This document shows positions 18,014 to 59,459 of a stretch of 64,000 nucleotides of DNA, one piece after another. Numbering within the stretch: the stretch's first letter is position 1; the number at the start of each line of letters is the position of its first letter. This stretch comes from Macrostomum lignano (taxonomy: Eukaryota), in contig NIVC01000025.1 of the NCBI GenBank assembly GCA_002269645.1, positions 124,001-188,000 of the forward strand. The letters are read 5' to 3'. The notes beneath the pieces were generated by a model. That model saw only the letters and a list, made by a program, of their open reading frames with translations, made no database searches and had not been told where the DNA came from. A program made the translations under genes and the position numbers.

Positions 18014-18673
18014 CCTAAATCTATAGAAAATCTAAGCCTATAGAGTACAGGTGTTTATACTGAGCAGTCCATGGGCCTATTACAGCATCCTGTCAGAGCT
18101 GACCTCCAGCCTGAGGGTGAGTGTGGTGGAGATAAACGATGGCTTATAGGCCAGTCTGGTAGTATAGGGAATAAATTGACTGTTTAGCACCCTCATTTAT
18201 CCCTATATGGGTAACTCCCCCGGTGCTTATGCCCATGCTAATCAATTTCCACTTGTGGATCTGGTGGGGTGGGAGCACACAATGAGCCTAATTTTCCCCT
18301 TGTTTCACCCATCAATTCACCTGCAGATCTGGGAGGCCATTTTGCTGAATTTTTGGCTTTAATACGAGTCGCCCCAATCACACCAATGTGGGTGGCCGCT
18401 GGTCCTGCTGTTTCGAGAAGCAGGCAGAACCCTTGTTGTTTGAGGCAACTTGCAACTTTCTTTAACTTCCAGCGGCTCTCTCCTCACTCCCTCACTCTAC
18501 CCCTGACTACTTTCCTTTTGTTGCAGCAAAATTGTGTTTTGCTAGGAAATTTTCTAGCAGCAAAAGCGGCCTTCAGACCGGTGGGTGTTAGGGGTAATTT
18601 TGCAACCGTTTTGGAGAAAGTTGCTTTTATTTGCAACAAATTTTGGCTGCAATTTTTTTTCTGGGAACACCTA

Positions 18674-49920: not shown

Positions 49921-51062
49921 GCTGTGACAATTCAGGTGCCAGGTGAACAAAAGTGGCTATTAGGAGTGAGGCAGTCAACTGGGAAAAATATTTTAAAGAC
50001 AAAAGAGAAGATATACTATAGCAGCCGAAGTCGCATTTTGCAACAACTGGATAGCTATAATGTATATTAATGATAACTCAATGTTAGTACGAAGTTAGTT
50101 TAGTAATTAATAGCTGTGTCAACTGAATACATAGATTTGAGTATTGTATTGACGACAGAGTCAACTCTACATATACACTTACTAATCAGCTAATCTCTTA
50201 AAACATCTTATTAGAGGATCGGCACAGCAACGCTTATTAAAAAATTTATAGCCAGCCAATCAAAATACGAGTAGCAATCGGCTGGGGCCAATAAAACACA
50301 GAAGAGAAAGAGAGACAATTTAAAAGAAGAAGCAAACAGCAAAGCACCGCTAGTCAGAGAAACGAAGAGGAAAAAGTTGATTAATATTTCAAAGATTGAT
50401 TTAATTTTTTAAAGCGCAGTAAAAGACCATATGATAGCCAAGAGAAAAGTGAAATGTTTGTTTTCAAATTGAATTATTTGATAAAAGGAAGCGAATAAAA
50501 CCACATTAAGGAGATGAAATTAATACTATTATTACAATATTATTGATAATTTTCGACGCAAAATAATAAATTGTAGTTCTGACAATAAAGGACTGTGTTT
50601 ACTGATCAAAACTAATTCAAAAGCAAAGCGCATTTGCGTCACTTTATGCATTTCGCATTTATAACAACTCTATTTAGACTACTTGAGTCAGTAGCAAGTT
50701 AAGCGCTAACACAAACGACTCTTGGACTACTTTTTTTCACGACTTGACTCATTTTATTAATAAGTTGAGCTCGTTCTTGACACATTTTTGATCACAGCAA
50801 ACACAGTCTGGAAACTTTTACAACAATAACCTCGTATAAGCCGCAAAATTAGAGATAAAGAAGACAACATGACAGACAGGACAGAGGAGCATACACTCAT
50901 ACTGTGGCAATATAATAATTCTTAGATTATTCAGTAGGAAGTATAGCAGGCTGAGGCCTTGATTAGTTTTAATCGTCGTGCCCTGGCGACATCGGATGCT
51001 GCAATGGGAAATATGTAAGGGAATTGATTGACAGCGTAAATTAATTTTTGACTAACAAAATA

Positions 51063-51995
51063 GACGCCAACTTAGCGCCGCAGTCTACATTTTAGGCGCC
51101 AATTTAGCGCCGCAGTCTACATTTTAGGCGCCAATTTAGCGCCGCAGTCTACATTTTAGGCGCCAATTTAGCGCCGCAGTCTACACTTAAGGCGCCAACT
51201 TAGCGCCGCAGTCTACATTTAAGGCGCCAATTTAGCGCCGCAGTCTACATTTAAGGCGCCAATTTAGCGCCAAATTCTACATTTTAGGCGCCAATTTAGC
51301 GCCGCAGTCTACATTTAGGGCGCCAATTTAGCGCCAAATTCTACTTTTAAGGCGCCAATTTAGCGCCGCAGTCTACATTTAAGGCGCCAAATTCTATATT
51401 TTAGGCGCCAATTTAGCGCCGTAGTCTACATTTAAGGCGCCAATTTAGCGCCGCAGTCTACATTTAAGGCGCCAAATTCTATATTTCAGGCGTCAATTTA
51501 GCGCCGCAGTCTACATTTAAGGCGCCAATTTAGCGCCGCAGTCTACATTTTAAGCGCCAATTTAGCGCCGCAGTCTACATTTTAGGCGCCAATTTAGCGC
51601 CGCAGTCTACACTTAAGGCGCCAACTTAGCGCCGCAGTCTACATTTAAGGCGCCAATTTAGCGCCGCAGTCTACATTTAAGGCGCCAATTTAGCGCCGCA
51701 GTCTACATTTTAGGCGCCAATTTAGTGCCGCAGTCTACATTTCAGGCGCCAATTTAGCGCCGTAGTCTACATTTAAGGCGCCAATTTAGCGCCGCAGTCT
51801 ACATTTCAGGCGCCAATTTAGCGCCGTAGTCTACATTTTAGGCGCCAATTTAGCGCCGTAGTCTACATTTTAGGCGCCAATTTAGCGCCGCAGTCTACAA
51901 CTCTACATTTTAGGCGCCAATTTAGCGCCGTAGTCTACATTTTAGGCGTCAATTTAGCGCCGCAGTTTACAACTCTACATTTTAGGTGCCAATTT
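51063..51995. repeat. 32-bp minisatellite (GGCGCCAATTTAGCGCCGCAGTCTACATTTTA)
   Basis: Direct reading. Confidence 0.95.
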
Positions 51996-52336: not shown

Positions 52337-55300
52337 TCACTTGTGGCCTGGATTCGGGTGCTGCGTTTGAGCTTCATGATGTTCAGGAGTCTTATCATGA
52401 TGTTCAGGTGTCTTGTCATGATGTTCAGGTGTCTTATCATGGTGTTCAGGAGTCTTATCATGATGTTCAGGAGTCTTATCATGATGTTCAGGAGTCTTAT
52501 CATGATGTTCAGGTGTCTTATCATGATGTTCAGGTGTCTTATCATGATGTTCAGGTGTCTTATCATGATGTTCAGGTGTCTTATCATGATGTTCAGGTGT
52601 CTTATCATGATGTTCAGATGTCTTATCATGATGTTCAGGTGTCTTATCATGATGTTCAGGTGTCTTATCATGATGTTCAGATGTCTTATCATGATGTTCA
52701 GGTGTCTTATCATGATGTTCAGGCTTCTTATCATCATGATGTTCAGGTGTCTTATCATGATGTTCAGATGTCTTGTCATCATGATGCTCATCATCCTTAT
52801 CATGCCGTCCACTGTCTCGGTGGTCGTCGTGCTCCCGACTGTCCCGGTCATCCCGGTCGCGGCGATCCCGTCTGTCCCGATCGCGCCCACCGAGCAGCTG
52901 CAAAATTTCGTACTTCTACTACTGACATGAAGCTGACATGCTACTGACATGAAGCTGACATGCTACTGACATGAAGCTGACATGCTACTGACATGAAGCT
53001 GACATGCTACTGACATGAAGCTGACATGCTACTGACATGAAGCTGACATGCTACTGACAGACAAGGAGGCCCTCTTTATTCAGTATCCAGCAACAGCATG
53101 GAACTATCTCTATAAAAAAGTTGCAGACAGCTCAATAGCATTTTGATTGACAGGCCCCACACCCAGACGCTTACGTCCTCATCGTCGTCCGGGTGCTCGC
53201 GATCGTAATCGTCCTCGAACTGCTTGAATTCGTCGTCCTTGTAGGGCGGCGCGTCGTCCTCTTCGGAGGTCTGGGTGAGCGCGAGGGAAGGAGGTATATA
53301 TAGGTTTGGGTGGCTCTTGAGTAGGCTGAAGACAAGAGTAAAAAAGGCCAAGAGGCCAAACGGACAAGAGGCCAAAGAAACAAGAGGCCAAAGGGACAAG
53401 AGGCCAAAAGGGACAAGAGGCCAAAGGGACAAGAGGCCAAAGGGCTAAGAGGCCAAAGGGACAAGAGGCCAAAGGGACAAGAGGCCAAAGGGACAAGAGG
53501 CCAAAAGGGACAAGAGGCCAAAAGGGCTAAGAGGCCAAAGGGACAAGAGGCCAAAGGGACAAGAGGCCAAAGGGACAAGAGGCCAAAGGGCTAAGAGGCC
53601 AAAGGGCTAATAGGCCAAAGGGCCAGGAGGCCAAAGGGCTAATAGGCCAAAGGGCCAGGAGGCCAAAGGGCTAATAGGCCAAAGGGCCAGGAGGCCAAAG
53701 GGCTAATAGGCCAAAGGGCCAGGAGGCCAAAGGGCCAAAAGGGCAAAGGGCCTAGAGGGAAGATTGAGCCAAGAGCCAAGAGACCAAAGGGACAAGAGGT
53801 CAAAGGAAAAGAGGCCAAAGGGCCAAGAGGCCAATATAAACCCCAAACCCACCTTCCAATCATCGTCCTTCTTGAAGTCGGGATTCTTAGTCCACCGCTC
53901 GAACTCGTCCCAGCTGATCATCATGTCCTTGTTGGTGTCGACCTTGTCCAGCACCTCCTGCCGCATCCGCTCCATCTCGTGCTGCTTCTCTAACGCATTT
54001 ACCGTAGTATCGTTAGTGCGATTGTAGGCCTTCTCCAGCTGTTGGCGGGGGTCAGTTTGATATGAAAAACTTGTATTATGGGGTCATTTAAGGTCAAGCA
54101 ATGATTTTCATAATCAACACACTACTGACACCTTTTTATGCATTTCTTCTAAATTCTAAAACTAAAAAATAAAATATTTGCTTTTTCATACCGCAGCACC
54201 TGCTAAAATATCAAAGCAAGTCTACAAATAGAAAGCAAGCTAAACTACCTTTAGTTGCCTTTAAAAAATTATCTAAATTGATTTTCTGCTACTATTAGTA
54301 ATGACTCACTTCAATTGAAGATGCACAATGAGACGAAAATTTATTGGAAGCAAAAATGGAAGATAGTTTCATTTATGGATTCTACATACATACTACTTAA
54401 CAAATCTAATAAGTAGTAAGTAGCACACGAACCTCTTTCAGGAATAGCGCTTCAATCTCGTTAACGTCCAAATGCCCGTCTCCATTGACGTCTAGAAATT
54501 GACAACAGAATCGAGATGCGTTTAACTGAGTCTTGATTGTACTATTGTCTACTAACAGTAGTCAAAAAACAGCTTGCAGAATCCAATGCTAACAAAGAAA
54601 AAACAAAGACTCAGCCGTTACCATGCAGTAGGAAAAATGTTTTCGGATTGAAAGAATCCTTGTCCATGTGGTCCTCATCAGCCCAGGCGTCCCGCAGCTG
54701 CTCACTGCTGCCCTGTTAGGGATATATTTGGCATTTTGAAGACGAAATCGGGCCAAAAGGAAAAAAAACAAAGGACTTTAGTTCAGTAGGAAAAAATAGC
54801 CTTTTGAAAAACACCTGCAAATTAAATTTGACATAGTAACAGCAGACACCGAAGTAATGCCTAGATTTTAGGTTTATTAATTGTAACCTTCTGATATTTC
54901 TACTGTTAGTAAAGCGGAATGGGATGTTTATTTATTTTTTGTCAGAATGTCGTGTTTTTTGATTGATCTCAGACTAAATCAGAAAGATATAGTAACTACA
55001 AAACCGAAAAGAATAAACAAAAGTAACAAGAAAAGTCGATCGAGATCAAACTAATCTCCCGGATTCCTGCAGGACTTAGTAGTTACCGTGCAAATTAAAA
55101 AATGTTTTCGCGTCGAATTCTTGACTAAGTCCGTCCTGATTGGTCCACAGGTCCATCAGCTGGGCTAGACTGCCCTGGACGCGTTATTTTATAACTTTAT
55201 ATTTCTATATTGATTTGCACTTTTGTAAAGTTTCAGAACTTTGGAGATTTCGAGAAACTGGGCCATGAGAGATGAAGTGCGACTATGGGTCAGCTAGGGT

Positions 55301-58300
55301 CATGAGGGGTGACTGTGGGTCAGCTAGGGTCATGAGGGATGACTGTGGGTCAGCTATAGTCATGAGGGATGACTGTGGGTCAGCTATAGTCATGAGGGGT
55401 GACTATGGGTCAGCTGGGGTCATGAGGGATGACTGTGGGTCAGCTAGGGTCATGAGGGATGACTGTGAGTCAGCTGGGGTCATGAGGGATGACTGTGGGT
55501 CAGCTAGGGTCATGAGGGATGACTGTGGGTCAGCTAGGTCATGAGGGGTGACTGCGGGTTAGCTAGGGTCATGAGGGATGACTGTGGGTCAGCTATAGTC
55601 ATGAGGGGTGACTGTGGGTCAGCTGGGGCCATGAGGGGTGACTGTGGGTCAGCTGGGGCCATGAGGGGTGACTGTGGGTCAGCTAGGGTCATGAGGGGTG
55701 ACTGTGGGTCAGCTAGGGTCATGAGGGGTGACTGTGGGTCAGCTAGGGTCATGAGAGATGACTGTGGGTCAGCTATAGTCATGAGGGATGACTGTGGGTC
55801 AGCTATAATCATGAGGGGTGACTGTGGGTCAGCTGGGGCCATGAGGGGTGACTGTGGGTCAGCTGGGGCCATGAGGGGTGACTGTGGGTCAGCTGGGGTC
55901 ATGAGGGGTGACTGTGGGTCAGCTGGGGTTATGAGGGGTGACTGTGGGTCAGTTAGGGTCATGAAAGACGGCAGTTTGTTGCTATAAATAGTAATTATTA
56001 TTTATTCAAAAAAATACTTCACAGAAACTTCACAGATAAAACCCACAGAATTGAAACACCCCAAGTTCCTAGTAACTGTTTCGAAAAGCAAGCTAAATTG
56101 CGCATTAACGCACCGGATGGTGAATCTTTTCATGTTGCTTGTGCTTCTTTTTCTCTTCTTGGTATTCCTTCTCGGCCGCCTCTCTGGCTTTGGTGTCGTT
56201 AATCTTGTGCAGCTTGCGCAGTCTCAGATGCTCCTTCATCATCTCGTACTGCTTGTATTGCTCCTGAATTGAAGAAGAATTGAAGAATAAGTAAGTTGTA
56301 GGAAACATTATTGACTTGTGTCTATGGACTGCTGAGCGCTTCTTAACGAATTATCCCTAATTGGTCACAGCAGCTTATTGTTAATTTCATTCTTCTCTTC
56401 CTCATTCCCCTATCTCTTTCCAATCATCCCAGTCTATTCCCAATCTTCCCATTTCTTTCTCATCCTCCCATCTCTTACTCATCCTCCAATCTATTCATCA
56501 TCCTCCCATCTCTTCCTCATCCTCTCATCTCTTCCTCATCCTCTCATCTTTTCCTCATCCTCAATTTCTTCCTCATCCTCCCATCTATTCCACAGACTCC
56601 CATCGATTCCTCCCATACCACAGCGCTCCCCAGCTCACCTGCTTGGCCTCGTCAACCCTGTGCATATCGGAGACCACCTGGTGGATCAACTTTTCCAAAT
56701 CGGACGCCTCAAACGAATGGGGATTCTCGTGATCCAAATGAGCCTTCTTAATGGTCTCCTGGTCCATGTTGAACACATCCGGATGGATTGGAACTCCCGC
56801 TTCGCGCATCGGATTTCCGGCGGCAGCTTTTTTAGCTTCTAACATTTTCTCCAACGCGTTGAGCCGGTCAACCTCGTTGCGCTTGATCTCGTCTAGGCGA
56901 GTGCGCACAGAGTGGTCGACGAACTCCAGCTGGCTAGCCAAATCTCCCGCCTGCACAGTGGGGAAAATTTGTAGGAACAAATAAGAAGCAAAATCCTACT
57001 GACACCATTATCTGCTTGTCCAATGTCTGCAAATTTTACTATCTAATCTCACACTAGTCTATCGCGGCGATCTGATGTGCCAGGGGCCCCCAAGGCTCGT
57101 TTCCAATTTAAGTGCAGTCACATTAATTTGGGTCTAAATTGGAATCTCCGCTTGGCTCTGCTCGTGCAATTAACGGCCTTGAGGGCCAACCCCCAAGGCA
57201 CAGTGAAGTGTACATGCCTAACAATTGATAAAGTTAGGGCCGCTGTACACTCCTGTGTGAGTGTGTGCCTGTGCGTATGACTGCGTACGTATCCGCGCGC
57301 TAATTGTGTGCCTGCTCAGGGGAGTCAGGCGGAATGGGCAGCAATGCCTCTCGCCGGTTGTGTGACAATGTCGCTTAAAGTGTGCCAGGGTGCAGACAGC
57401 CTCCTTTGCTTCTAAAATTATATTAAACACTATTCACGCTTTGTCAGAATGTTCCGGGTAAGCTTCCTAGAGTTTAGTGGTAACTACATTAAATTAATAA
57501 ACAATAACTGCAATTTCTATATAATAACCTATAACTATATTAGGGGCTTGACAGCCAGATAAAAGAGGCCGACCGGCCGACCCCACAGATACTAGAATAA
57601 CTAGGTGGGCCACTCAGCACATTTGCGTGTAAGCTACTTTCAGTTCAGTAGTAAGTTGAACAGAAGCATTTTAATGTATTTTTAAAACCAAAGGCATTTA
57701 TTGGCTCTTGATTCCCAGCTTAAACCCTCCAATCGCGCCTTTCCACACTACCCCCCGCCCCGTCCCAATTTTTATTGCCTTTTTCGGAATTCCAGCCTAA
57801 AGCTGTCATGTACATTTCAGTGGACTGGCTAATGTACATTATGGCTGAACCAATTAGCAAGTTGTTTATGCCTGCAAGCTTGTGCTTCTAAACTTATTAA
57901 AGTCATTTCAGCCACCTTTATTTTTTTAAAAAAAAAAGCTTATGTATTCTTCTTTGCTACTGAACTGAAAGTAGAAATCTGTTTTGCTTACTATATACGC
58001 CTGAGTGGCCCATCTAGTTATTTTCTAGATCTATCTGGTCTAATATCTAATATCTAGATCTATCTAGTCTATATAGTCACTCCTAAATCTATAAAAAACC
58101 AACCACCACCACAAAAAACGAATGGGTTATTAAAATAACCAAATCACTAAATAGTGCATTTAATAAGTTAATAACTAAAACAAGCGTATTAAGTAATTAA
58201 GCAATTAAGCTTCAAATCACGTTACTACAAGTAGTGTGAAACATGTAGTTTATGCAAATAAATCTGGCTAAGCTATGCCCTATGGGTGCACCACAACAAC

Positions 58301-59459
58301 ACAAACGGGCAACGTGGATTCAAGCGCACAGTAACATGCATTTTCAAAAATTGTCACCTCAGAAAGATTTTGAACTCGTTTAGCAAATTCCTTGTTTGAT
58401 TCCAGAATCTGTGACACCTCTCTCACATAGTTTGCATAGGGCAAATGGGACTGAAAGTGCGATAGTTATCAATTAAGCTTGTTAAAACTAATAATCAGGT
58501 GCAATTAGGTTATAAGCGGATAAGATAAATGCTTTATTTGTGCTGTTATTGTGTGTGAAAAAAACTAATCCTGAAAATTAAAGAAAATGACAAAACCTAT
58601 CATTAGGAAAAACAGCACCACGAATGCTAGAAAAAATTAAATAAATTAGATAAGAAACTCTTACAGGTAAAATCGCCAATTCTAACAAACTACAGTTTTT
58701 TAGACAAAAAAAACACATACACTCATCTTGTGAGTAGAATTCTTGAACTTTTCCCATTCAGACTTGAAATGCTTGTCCATGTGCAGGTGCGCCATAACCT
58801 CTTCGACATATTTTTTATAATCGTCAGGACTGTAGGCCTTCTGAAAACCAGCAATTTTGGCCCGCAATTTTTGCAAGCTTTTAGAATTACAAACTGCCAA
58901 ATGGCATCCTGCTGATTCTGGGTTAAAGTTGATGTGCGATAACACACAGAAAACCTACTAAGAATGACAAACTTTCTTAAAGAATGTTACTATATATAAT
59001 GCATACATGTAGTTTATGTTAGACACAATTTACTTGAAGCTCTGAAATAGAAAAAAGAGAAATATCTTCTAATAGAAGATACCATACTCGTAACTTATTT
59101 AATGTTTGAATGTTAAGCAATATAAACTATGATTTATGAAGGCATGGCAGTATGATCAATTATTTTTTACAATGTATTTGTCAGCTACTATAGATAGACC
59201 AGATACTAAAAGCCAAGAAGCATCCCAGAGTCACTGTTAGAATCACTGAGTTGCAAATGGGGAGTGTATAGAATCAATATGCAGATCAATCAATATGGAT
59301 TTAATAAAAAACACTGAATCTTACCAGCAAGTCATCAGCTGGTCCTGGCTTCTTTGCCACAACAGTGGGTGCAGGTTTTTTTACAACTGGGGGCGCAAAG
59401 CAGCCAGTCAGACAGCAAAATAGAATAGCAGCCAATGCAGCTCGATGACAGTGCATCAT
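52337..59459 (-). CDS. nucb: Nucleobindin (NUCB1/2-like, secreted/Golgi EF-hand Ca2+-binding protein); exons 59459-59325, 58840-58723, 58681-58665 (tentative), 58450-58358, 56950-56639, 56263-56114, 54712-54622, 54491-54433, 54038-53853, 53270-53175, 52897-52337
   Basis: Signal peptide MMHCHRAALAAILFCCLTGCFAPPV; LEFVDHSVRTRLDEIKR; HENPHSFEASDLEKLI; YKQYEMMKEH; HHP|GSSEQLRDAW; FNPKTFFLLH; EF-hands DVNGDGHLDVNE and DTNKDMMISWDE. Phases consistent. Use of the N-terminal small exons and of the last exon is less certain. Confidence 0.92.
52365..52790. repeat. 21-bp tandem repeat (CATGATGTTCAGGTGTCTTAT), probably coding (HHDKTPE)n in the nucleobindin last exon
   Basis: Direct reading; in frame with the acceptor at 52898-52899. 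Confidence 0.9.
52915..53060. repeat. 22-bp minisatellite (CTACTGACATGAAGCTGACATG)
   Basis: Direct reading. Confidence 0.93.
53345..53835. repeat. 16-bp minisatellite (GAGGCCAAAGGGACAA and variants)
   Basis: Direct reading. Confidence 0.92.
55265..55965. repeat. 30-bp minisatellite (ATGAGGGGTGACTGTGGGTCAGCTAGGGTC)
   Basis: Direct reading; 10-aa periodic ORFs. Confidence 0.95.
57071..57405 (+). mobile_element. tRNA-derived SINE, copy 3 (5'-truncated), nucleobindin intron
   Basis: Shares CACATTAATTTGGG...GCAATTAACGGCCTTGAGGGCCAACCCC...AAAGTTAGGGCCGCTGTACACTCCTGTGTGAG...GCCAGGGTGCA with the other two copies; A box missing. Confidence 0.85.
57586..58037. mobile_element. Degenerate MITE-like element with about 85-bp inverted repeats
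   Basis: AATAACTAGGTGGGCCACTCAG...CTACTTTCAGTTCAGTAG vs CTACTGAACTGAAAGTAG...CTGAGTGGCCCATCTAGTTATT. No TSD found. Confidence 0.6.

Follow-up and report, generated by a model that had tools for sequence, protein, structure and literature searches.

We examined a 64,000-nucleotide stretch of the genome of the flatworm Macrostomum lignano (hereafter the window), which agrees base for base over 23 kb with contig NIVC01000025.1 of the Mlig_3_7 assembly and whose minus strand encodes a nucleobindin between position 59459 and approximately position 50969. Nucleobindins are conserved Ca2+-binding proteins that are secreted or reside in the Golgi, and in vertebrates their N-terminal fragment, nesfatin-1, acts as a peptide regulating appetite; we know of no receptor identified for it. 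The gene contains two pairs of homologous exons, which we call A and B, and C1 and C2, and the subject of this analysis is how the members of each pair may be used. All exons of the gene model, E1 to E11, are listed in Table 1.

The protein assembled from the exons that we read from the sequence matched 112 proteins in a homologue search. The top match is an M. lignano protein, A0A1I8HPU3 (P0001 in our set), which is 88% identical to a query carrying both A and B, and which agrees with our gene model residue for residue over E1, A, E4, and E5; wherever the two share an exon they are identical. A further 110 of the matched proteins are NUCB proteins. The next matches are insect, mollusc, and vertebrate nucleobindin-1 and nucleobindin-2 proteins, at 35–46% identity. 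E1 is identical to the N-termini of A0A1I8HPU3 and of the GenBank model P0114, and AG acceptors and GT donors are present at all exons of the model. The locus resembles the genes for NUCB1 (calnuc) and NUCB2 (the nesfatin precursor) in several respects: it has the NUCB1_N domain (PF25434; gathering cutoff 27 bits, with scores of 90.3 for the A form and 95.1 for the B form), an EF-hand pair (EF-hand_7; 44.9 bits for the C1 form and 40.6 for the C2 form), a match to the solved nucleobindin 1 structure 1SNL (E = 3.8e-23), and the residues ...LDEIKR at the homologous position. The N-terminus, as read from the sequence, is hydrophobic (MMHCHRAALAAILFCCLTGCFA) and may be a signal peptide; it forms a helix at residues 3–20 in an AlphaFold2 (AF2) model. 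Together with the family alignment, the domain and structure matches identify the predicted gene as a nucleobindin, which bears out the identity given to it in an earlier, model-made interpretation of the bare DNA (the sequence-only reading). A second copy of the gene, 97–100% identical, is present on contig NIVC01000659.1, and there is a paralogue, Mlig034413, on contig NIVC01000526.1 that is 52% identical.

Exons A and B have the coordinates and translations given in the sequence-only reading, and sequence comparison confirmed that they are paralogous copies of a nesfatin-core helix exon, because the two peptides, taken singly, match one and the same segment of the Pfam NUCB1_N profile (A at profile positions 34–61 with 18.3 bits, B at positions 32–60 with 22.5 bits) and because their cores are alike. 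The alignment of A to the N-terminal helix of the family was a check that had been set beforehand. Across the shared 18-residue core, 8 residues are identical, as had been reported, and the local alignment score of 36 was reached in only 8 of 5000 shuffles (mean 18.6 +/- 3.8, z ~4.6). Without either exon, the NUCB1_N domain score falls to 70.6 bits. The family alignment shows near-invariant Y, Y, L, and F residues that are kept in both exons; in addition, A keeps D and B keeps E. The segment encoded by either exon aligns to M30, the active mid-segment of nesfatin-1 (PMC3516497). Since both exons are phase 0 at both ends, either one can follow E1 and join E4 in frame, as the sequence-only reading had also claimed. 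AF2 models built from a 58-sequence alignment gave a predicted template modelling score (pTM) of 0.71 for the A isoform and 0.77 for the B isoform, and the swapped region forms a shared helix-turn-helix in both–helices 50–66 and 68–79 in A, at a predicted local distance difference test (pLDDT) of 82–95, and helices 54–66 and 68–75 in B, at a pLDDT of 83–93.

The second pair, C1 and C2, which the sequence-only reading had missed, has a local alignment score of 69, which was reached in 0 of 5000 shuffles, and its region corresponds to the beginning of the calnuc Ca2+-binding domain whose solved structure is 1SNL. Joining C1 to C2 causes a frameshift and many stop codons, and phase arithmetic indicates that skipping both exons also shifts the frame. 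A productive mRNA is thus predicted to need exactly one of the two, because inclusion of both or of neither breaks the frame. C1/C2 is the stronger case for mutual exclusivity than A/B, because here the reading frame itself enforces the choice.

We compared the exon content of four M. lignano database models. Each of them contains A or B; none has the two together, none lacks them both, and all contain C2 only. The GenBank models PAA93516 (from this locus) and PAA78953 (from the second copy) have the structure E1-B-E4-E5-C2-E7-E8-E9-E11. The UniProt models A0A1I8HPU3 and A0A1I8FUU4, which we take to come from the older ML2 assembly, begin E1-A-E4-E5-C2, and A0A1I8HPU3 takes part of E10 with its repeat spliced out internally. 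The form with B only and C2 only rests on transcripts, because the GenBank annotation was built from StringTie/TACO assemblies of RNA sequencing (RNA-seq) data and mapped de novo transcripts, with open reading frames called by TransDecoder (PMC5730564). We also counted the helix motif in 120 retrieved proteins, which are NUCB homologues together with a few fragments and the M. lignano models. One motif is present in 99 of them and none in 21, which are fragments or divergent sequences; no protein has two.

The paralogue on NIVC01000526.1 indicates which member of each pair is the original type. Its only helix exon is 93 nt long and its only C exon is 91 nt long, and lenient TBLASTN searches of its locus found no further A-like or C1-like exons. 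Its intron between exon 1 and the helix exon is only about 90 nt long, so it has no room for a second helix exon. B and C2 match the paralogue's exons in length and are closer to them in sequence (alignment scores of 64 for B versus 47 for A, and 112 for C2 versus 60 for C1), and by this comparison B and C2 are the canonical exons, while A and C1 are diverged copies that each lie upstream of their partner. In the family alignment, a loop after the helix is 4 residues shorter in B, in the paralogue, and in the database protein P0003, but not in A or in other animals. This loop length is a hint that A could be older than the gene duplication, although 30–40 residues are too few to settle the point. 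The exon duplications appear to be old, because DNA identity is low in both pairs (56% in the core of A/B and 60% in C1/C2); codon position 2 is the best kept in both.

Despite this divergence, A keeps a 40-codon open frame, both of its splice sites, and five residues that are invariant in the family (Y, Y, L, D, and F). In both gene copies, the open frames and the AG and GT sites of A and C1 are intact. The copies differ at 2 sites in A and 1 site in C1, and all three differences are synonymous; E4 has 9 differences, of which 4 are replacements, and B is 100% identical. Whole introns in the 5' half of the gene have diverged by about 7% between the copies, as compared to 0–1.7% for A and B, but this contrast is weak because the immediate flanks of A and B have also diverged by only about 2%.

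The reading that we prefer, at a probability of roughly 60%, is that this one nucleobindin gene has two clusters of alternatively used duplicated exons, with B and C2 as the defaults and A and C1 as the alternatives. Splicing of A and C1 into mRNAs is an inference, as is the mutual exclusion of A and B. In the first cluster, A or B would each supply the first helix-turn-helix of the NUCB N-terminal domain, the homologue of M30; in the second, C1 or C2 would each supply the linker and the entering helix of EF-hand 1. B and C2 would be the default exons of ancestral type, and A and C1 old, diverged upstream copies kept under protein-level selection. The mRNAs would most likely carry either A or B, although the frame does not force this choice. 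Multiplied by two alternative 3' terminal exons, the combinations of A/B with C1/C2 could give up to eight variants of a secreted Ca2+-binding protein from a single gene.

Several observations weigh against this reading. A and B each have a length divisible by three, so the frame permits an mRNA with both or with neither, and the intron between them, at 270 nt, presents no steric block. Docking/selector complementarity that might pair with A or B is not significant, comprising one AT-rich match of 13/14 against 0.73 expected when 14-mers were counted against shuffles. The exclusivity of A and B may be regulatory rather than structural, and a minor mRNA form that includes both exons or omits both may exist. 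Exon A is represented only in gene models from the older assembly, and these UniProt models end it at ...NSTHK, six bases (two codons) before the gtatgt donor, where GT is missing from both gene copies, which read AAG/ATGAGT (58726–58715, with the slash marking the junction). The mismatch points either to a base difference in the older assembly or to a non-canonical junction. A phmmer search with the exon A peptide against 1.84 billion cluster representatives found no A-like sequence, returning one weak and probably spurious match, and C1 is absent from every database model examined. Finally, the two gene copies are 98–100% alike in their exons, and because they are so similar the three synonymous changes are weak evidence of selection, with P about 0.02 on the assumption that about one quarter of random changes are synonymous.

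The failure to find an A-like peptide elsewhere, the absence of C1 from the models, and the non-canonical junction from A to E4 that the A-containing models would need in this assembly all count for a rival explanation as well, namely that A and C1 are silent relics (pseudo-exons), that only B and C2 are spliced in, and that the UniProt models with A are prediction artefacts. It draws further support from the fact that the one annotation with a known RNA basis uses B and C2 in each gene copy (PMC5730564), from the fusion of one A-containing model to the neighboring Sec13 gene, and from the weak polypyrimidine tract of C1 (aaataacgcgtccag). Yet the DNA of A and B has diverged almost to saturation, and even so A has kept its open frame, splice sites, and five invariant residues, and a Pfam match of its own. 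Similarly, C1 retains the pattern GS..QL.D.W...D..F..KTFF.LH and gives an EF-hand score slightly above that of C2, and none of the differences between the gene copies in these two exons changes an amino acid. An ab initio predictor that took A would also have had no reason to omit B, as both are in frame. We consider it possible but rather unlikely that A and C1 are relics.

The sequence-only reading had allowed for either a protein with tandem helices or alternative isoforms. The second of these fits the database models. The first, in which A and B are constitutive or often included together so that the nucleobindin carries two tandem nesfatin-core helices, is a good deal less probable than the relic explanation. 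A (120 nt) and B (93 nt) do join in frame without stop codons, neither frame nor intron length stands in the way, and Pfam sees two matching stretches in the A+B construct. On the other hand, A and B occur together in no database model of either gene copy, the RNA-seq-based model omits A, no protein among the 120 has two motifs, and adding A to B raises the domain score only from 95.1 to 96.3 bits.

A third proposal, from the sequence-only reading, was that A uses a phase-1 donor at 58723 and that a 17-nt microexon, AATTGGCGATTTTACCT, restores the frame before B; the segment does exist, bounded by AG and GTAAGA, but it is not needed, because the gtatgt donor (58720) already joins the 120-nt form of A in frame to B or E4, with no stop codons across A-B, and we rejected the microexon as very improbable. 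In its favor, both boundaries are kept in the second gene copy and the sole substitution inside the segment would be synonymous in that frame. However, the phase-1 donor is the weaker site, lying two bases upstream of the stronger gtatgt, the acceptor of the segment has no pyrimidine tract, and the intron contains 22 short AG..GT segments, 8 of which–this one and seven others–repair the frame of a 118-nt A equally well. The peptide that it would create, KLAILP, was not found in any database protein model examined.

Table 1. Features of the nucleobindin locus and its surroundings, in window positions (phases are given as start/end).
Feature	Position	Strand	Length (nt)	Phase	Description
E1	59459-59325	-	135	ends 0	ATG ATG; putative signal peptide MMHCHRAALAAILFCCLTGCFA, to ...PGPADDLL; donor gtaaga
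Exon A	58840-58721	-	120	0/0	encodes KAYSPDDYKKYVEEVMAHLHMDKHFKSEWEKFKNSTHKMS; acceptor ttttcag, donor gtatgt
17-nt segment AATTGGCGATTTTACCT	58681-58665	-	17		AG..GT-bounded; rejected as a microexon
Exon B	58450-58358	-	93	0/0	encodes SHLPYANYVREVSQILESNKEFAKRVQNLSE; acceptor tttcag, donor gtgaca
E4	56950-56639	-	312	0/0	begins AGDLASQLEFVDHSVRTRLDEIKR; follows either A or B in database models
E5	56263-56114	-	150	0/0	
Exon C1	55174-55087	-	88	0/1	encodes GSLAQLMDLWTNQDGLSQEFDAKTFFNLH; precedes EF-hand 1
Exon C2	54712-54622	-	91	0/1	encodes GSSEQLRDAWADEDHMDKDSFNPKTFFLLH; in all database models
E7	54491-54433	-	59	1/0	EF-hand 1 loop DVNGDGHLDVNEIEALFLKE
E8	54038-53853	-	186		EF-hand 2
E9	53270-53175	-	96		acidic segment
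E10, terminal option 1	52897-52337	-			Arg/Asp-rich stretch, about 19 copies of a 21-nt repeat encoding EHHDKTP, stop
E11, terminal option 2	50998-50969	-			HPMSPGHDD and stop; used by GenBank models
KR codons (in E4)	56884-56879	-			within DEIKR, 56893-56879
MITE-like foldback	57596-58022		~427		in the B-E4 intron; terminal inverted repeats 57596-57654 and 57954-58022
Minisatellite	56394-56612				intronic
Minisatellite	55281-55964				intronic
Minisatellite	53331-53834				intronic
Minisatellite	52919-53059				intronic
Minisatellite	51061-51971				intronic
Sec13-like gene	48675-46400	-			WD40 gene

Clusters of mutually exclusive exons that arose by tandem exon duplication are well known, and homologous pairs of exons with the same phase and similar lengths have been catalogued in Drosophila and human. 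A/B and C1/C2 resemble such clusters in being adjacent, homologous, of the same phases and similar lengths, and swappable within the fold. C1/C2 is also like the classic clusters that are policed by nonsense-mediated decay, in which inclusion of both exons or of neither shifts the frame. A/B differs from the classic clusters because both of its exons are multiples of three, they differ in length by 27 nt, and its exclusivity is deduced from gene models. The new instance here would be the occurrence of such exons in a nucleobindin, where we found none reported: our literature search found no paper that connects nucleobindin with mutually exclusive exons in any relevant sense, and none naming these M. 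lignano gene identifiers.

Compared to NUCB1 and NUCB2, the locus is unusual in having two alternative genomic copies of the helix where each of the 99 full-length homologues has one, two exons before the EF-hands, and the option of a His-rich (EHHDKTP)n tail. A parallel is nucleobindin-2 of octopus, in which an exon homologous to A/B, with the same phase-0 boundaries (...IK/SG...), is alternatively spliced. As compared to isoform X1 of Octopus sinensis, the predicted isoform X3 of O. vulgaris lacks exactly the 36 residues of this exon, so its boundaries and phase appear to be ancient. In octopus, however, a single exon is skipped and not swapped for a paralogous copy. Pairs of NUCB isoforms from Mytilus, Bradysia, and Octopus showed no exon swap, but only C-terminal differences and the one cassette skip.

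Nesfatin-1 is released from vertebrate nucleobindin at a dibasic site, and the sequence-only reading had noted that this KR site is conserved in M. lignano. We confirmed its coordinates, and in the family alignment it coincides with DE[IL]KR in all 21 other NUCB sequences (22/22 in total). Being conserved across the family, it says nothing about this locus in particular, and AF2 places it inside a long predicted helix (residues 96–128 in the A isoform and 92–124 in the B isoform). A more speculative extension, which we regard as doubtful, is that exon swapping in this one flatworm gene could yield two nesfatin-like peptides whose M30-type cores differ at about 55% of positions, and that together with the swap of the EF-hand 1 entry helix this could diversify both hormone-like signaling and Ca2+ sensing, possibly by coordinated splicing of A with C1 and of B with C2. 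Two natural versions of the M30 core in any case allow the residues that must stay (Y..Y[VL]..V...L..[DN]K.F) to be compared with those that may vary. The gene also adds a clear candidate case of mutually exclusive splicing in a model flatworm that regenerates and for which transgenesis is available, so that its isoforms are directly testable. For annotation, the current GenBank models are missing exons A and C1 and the His-rich terminal exon.

The divergence between the two gene copies falls along the gene, from about 7% in introns upstream of E5 to 0.2–2.7% from C1 onwards. This drop suggests that gene conversion or recombination had a boundary near the intron between E5 and C1. Almost every long intron contains a minisatellite (Table 1), with 6 to 32 repeat units at periods of 19, 30, 16, 22, and 32 nt, and these arrays make up most of the length difference between the two copies. 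The intron between B and E4 contains a foldback element resembling a miniature inverted-repeat transposable element (MITE), which the two gene copies share, and the paralogue locus on NIVC01000526.1 has a related terminal repeat at about position 18077. RNA pairing was considered as a mechanism for the choice between A and B and was rejected, since this foldback is the only strong pairing in an inverted-repeat scan.

The last nucleobindin exon (E11, 50969) is followed on the same strand, after approximately 2.3 kb, by a Sec13-like WD40 gene. The UniProt model A0A1I8FUU4 joins nucleobindin exon 9 directly to this gene (...DDDED/PTMVSVMQ..., with the slash at the junction). Polycistronic, trans-spliced transcription is known in M. 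lignano (PMC5730564), and the fusion model could reflect a transcription unit of this kind.

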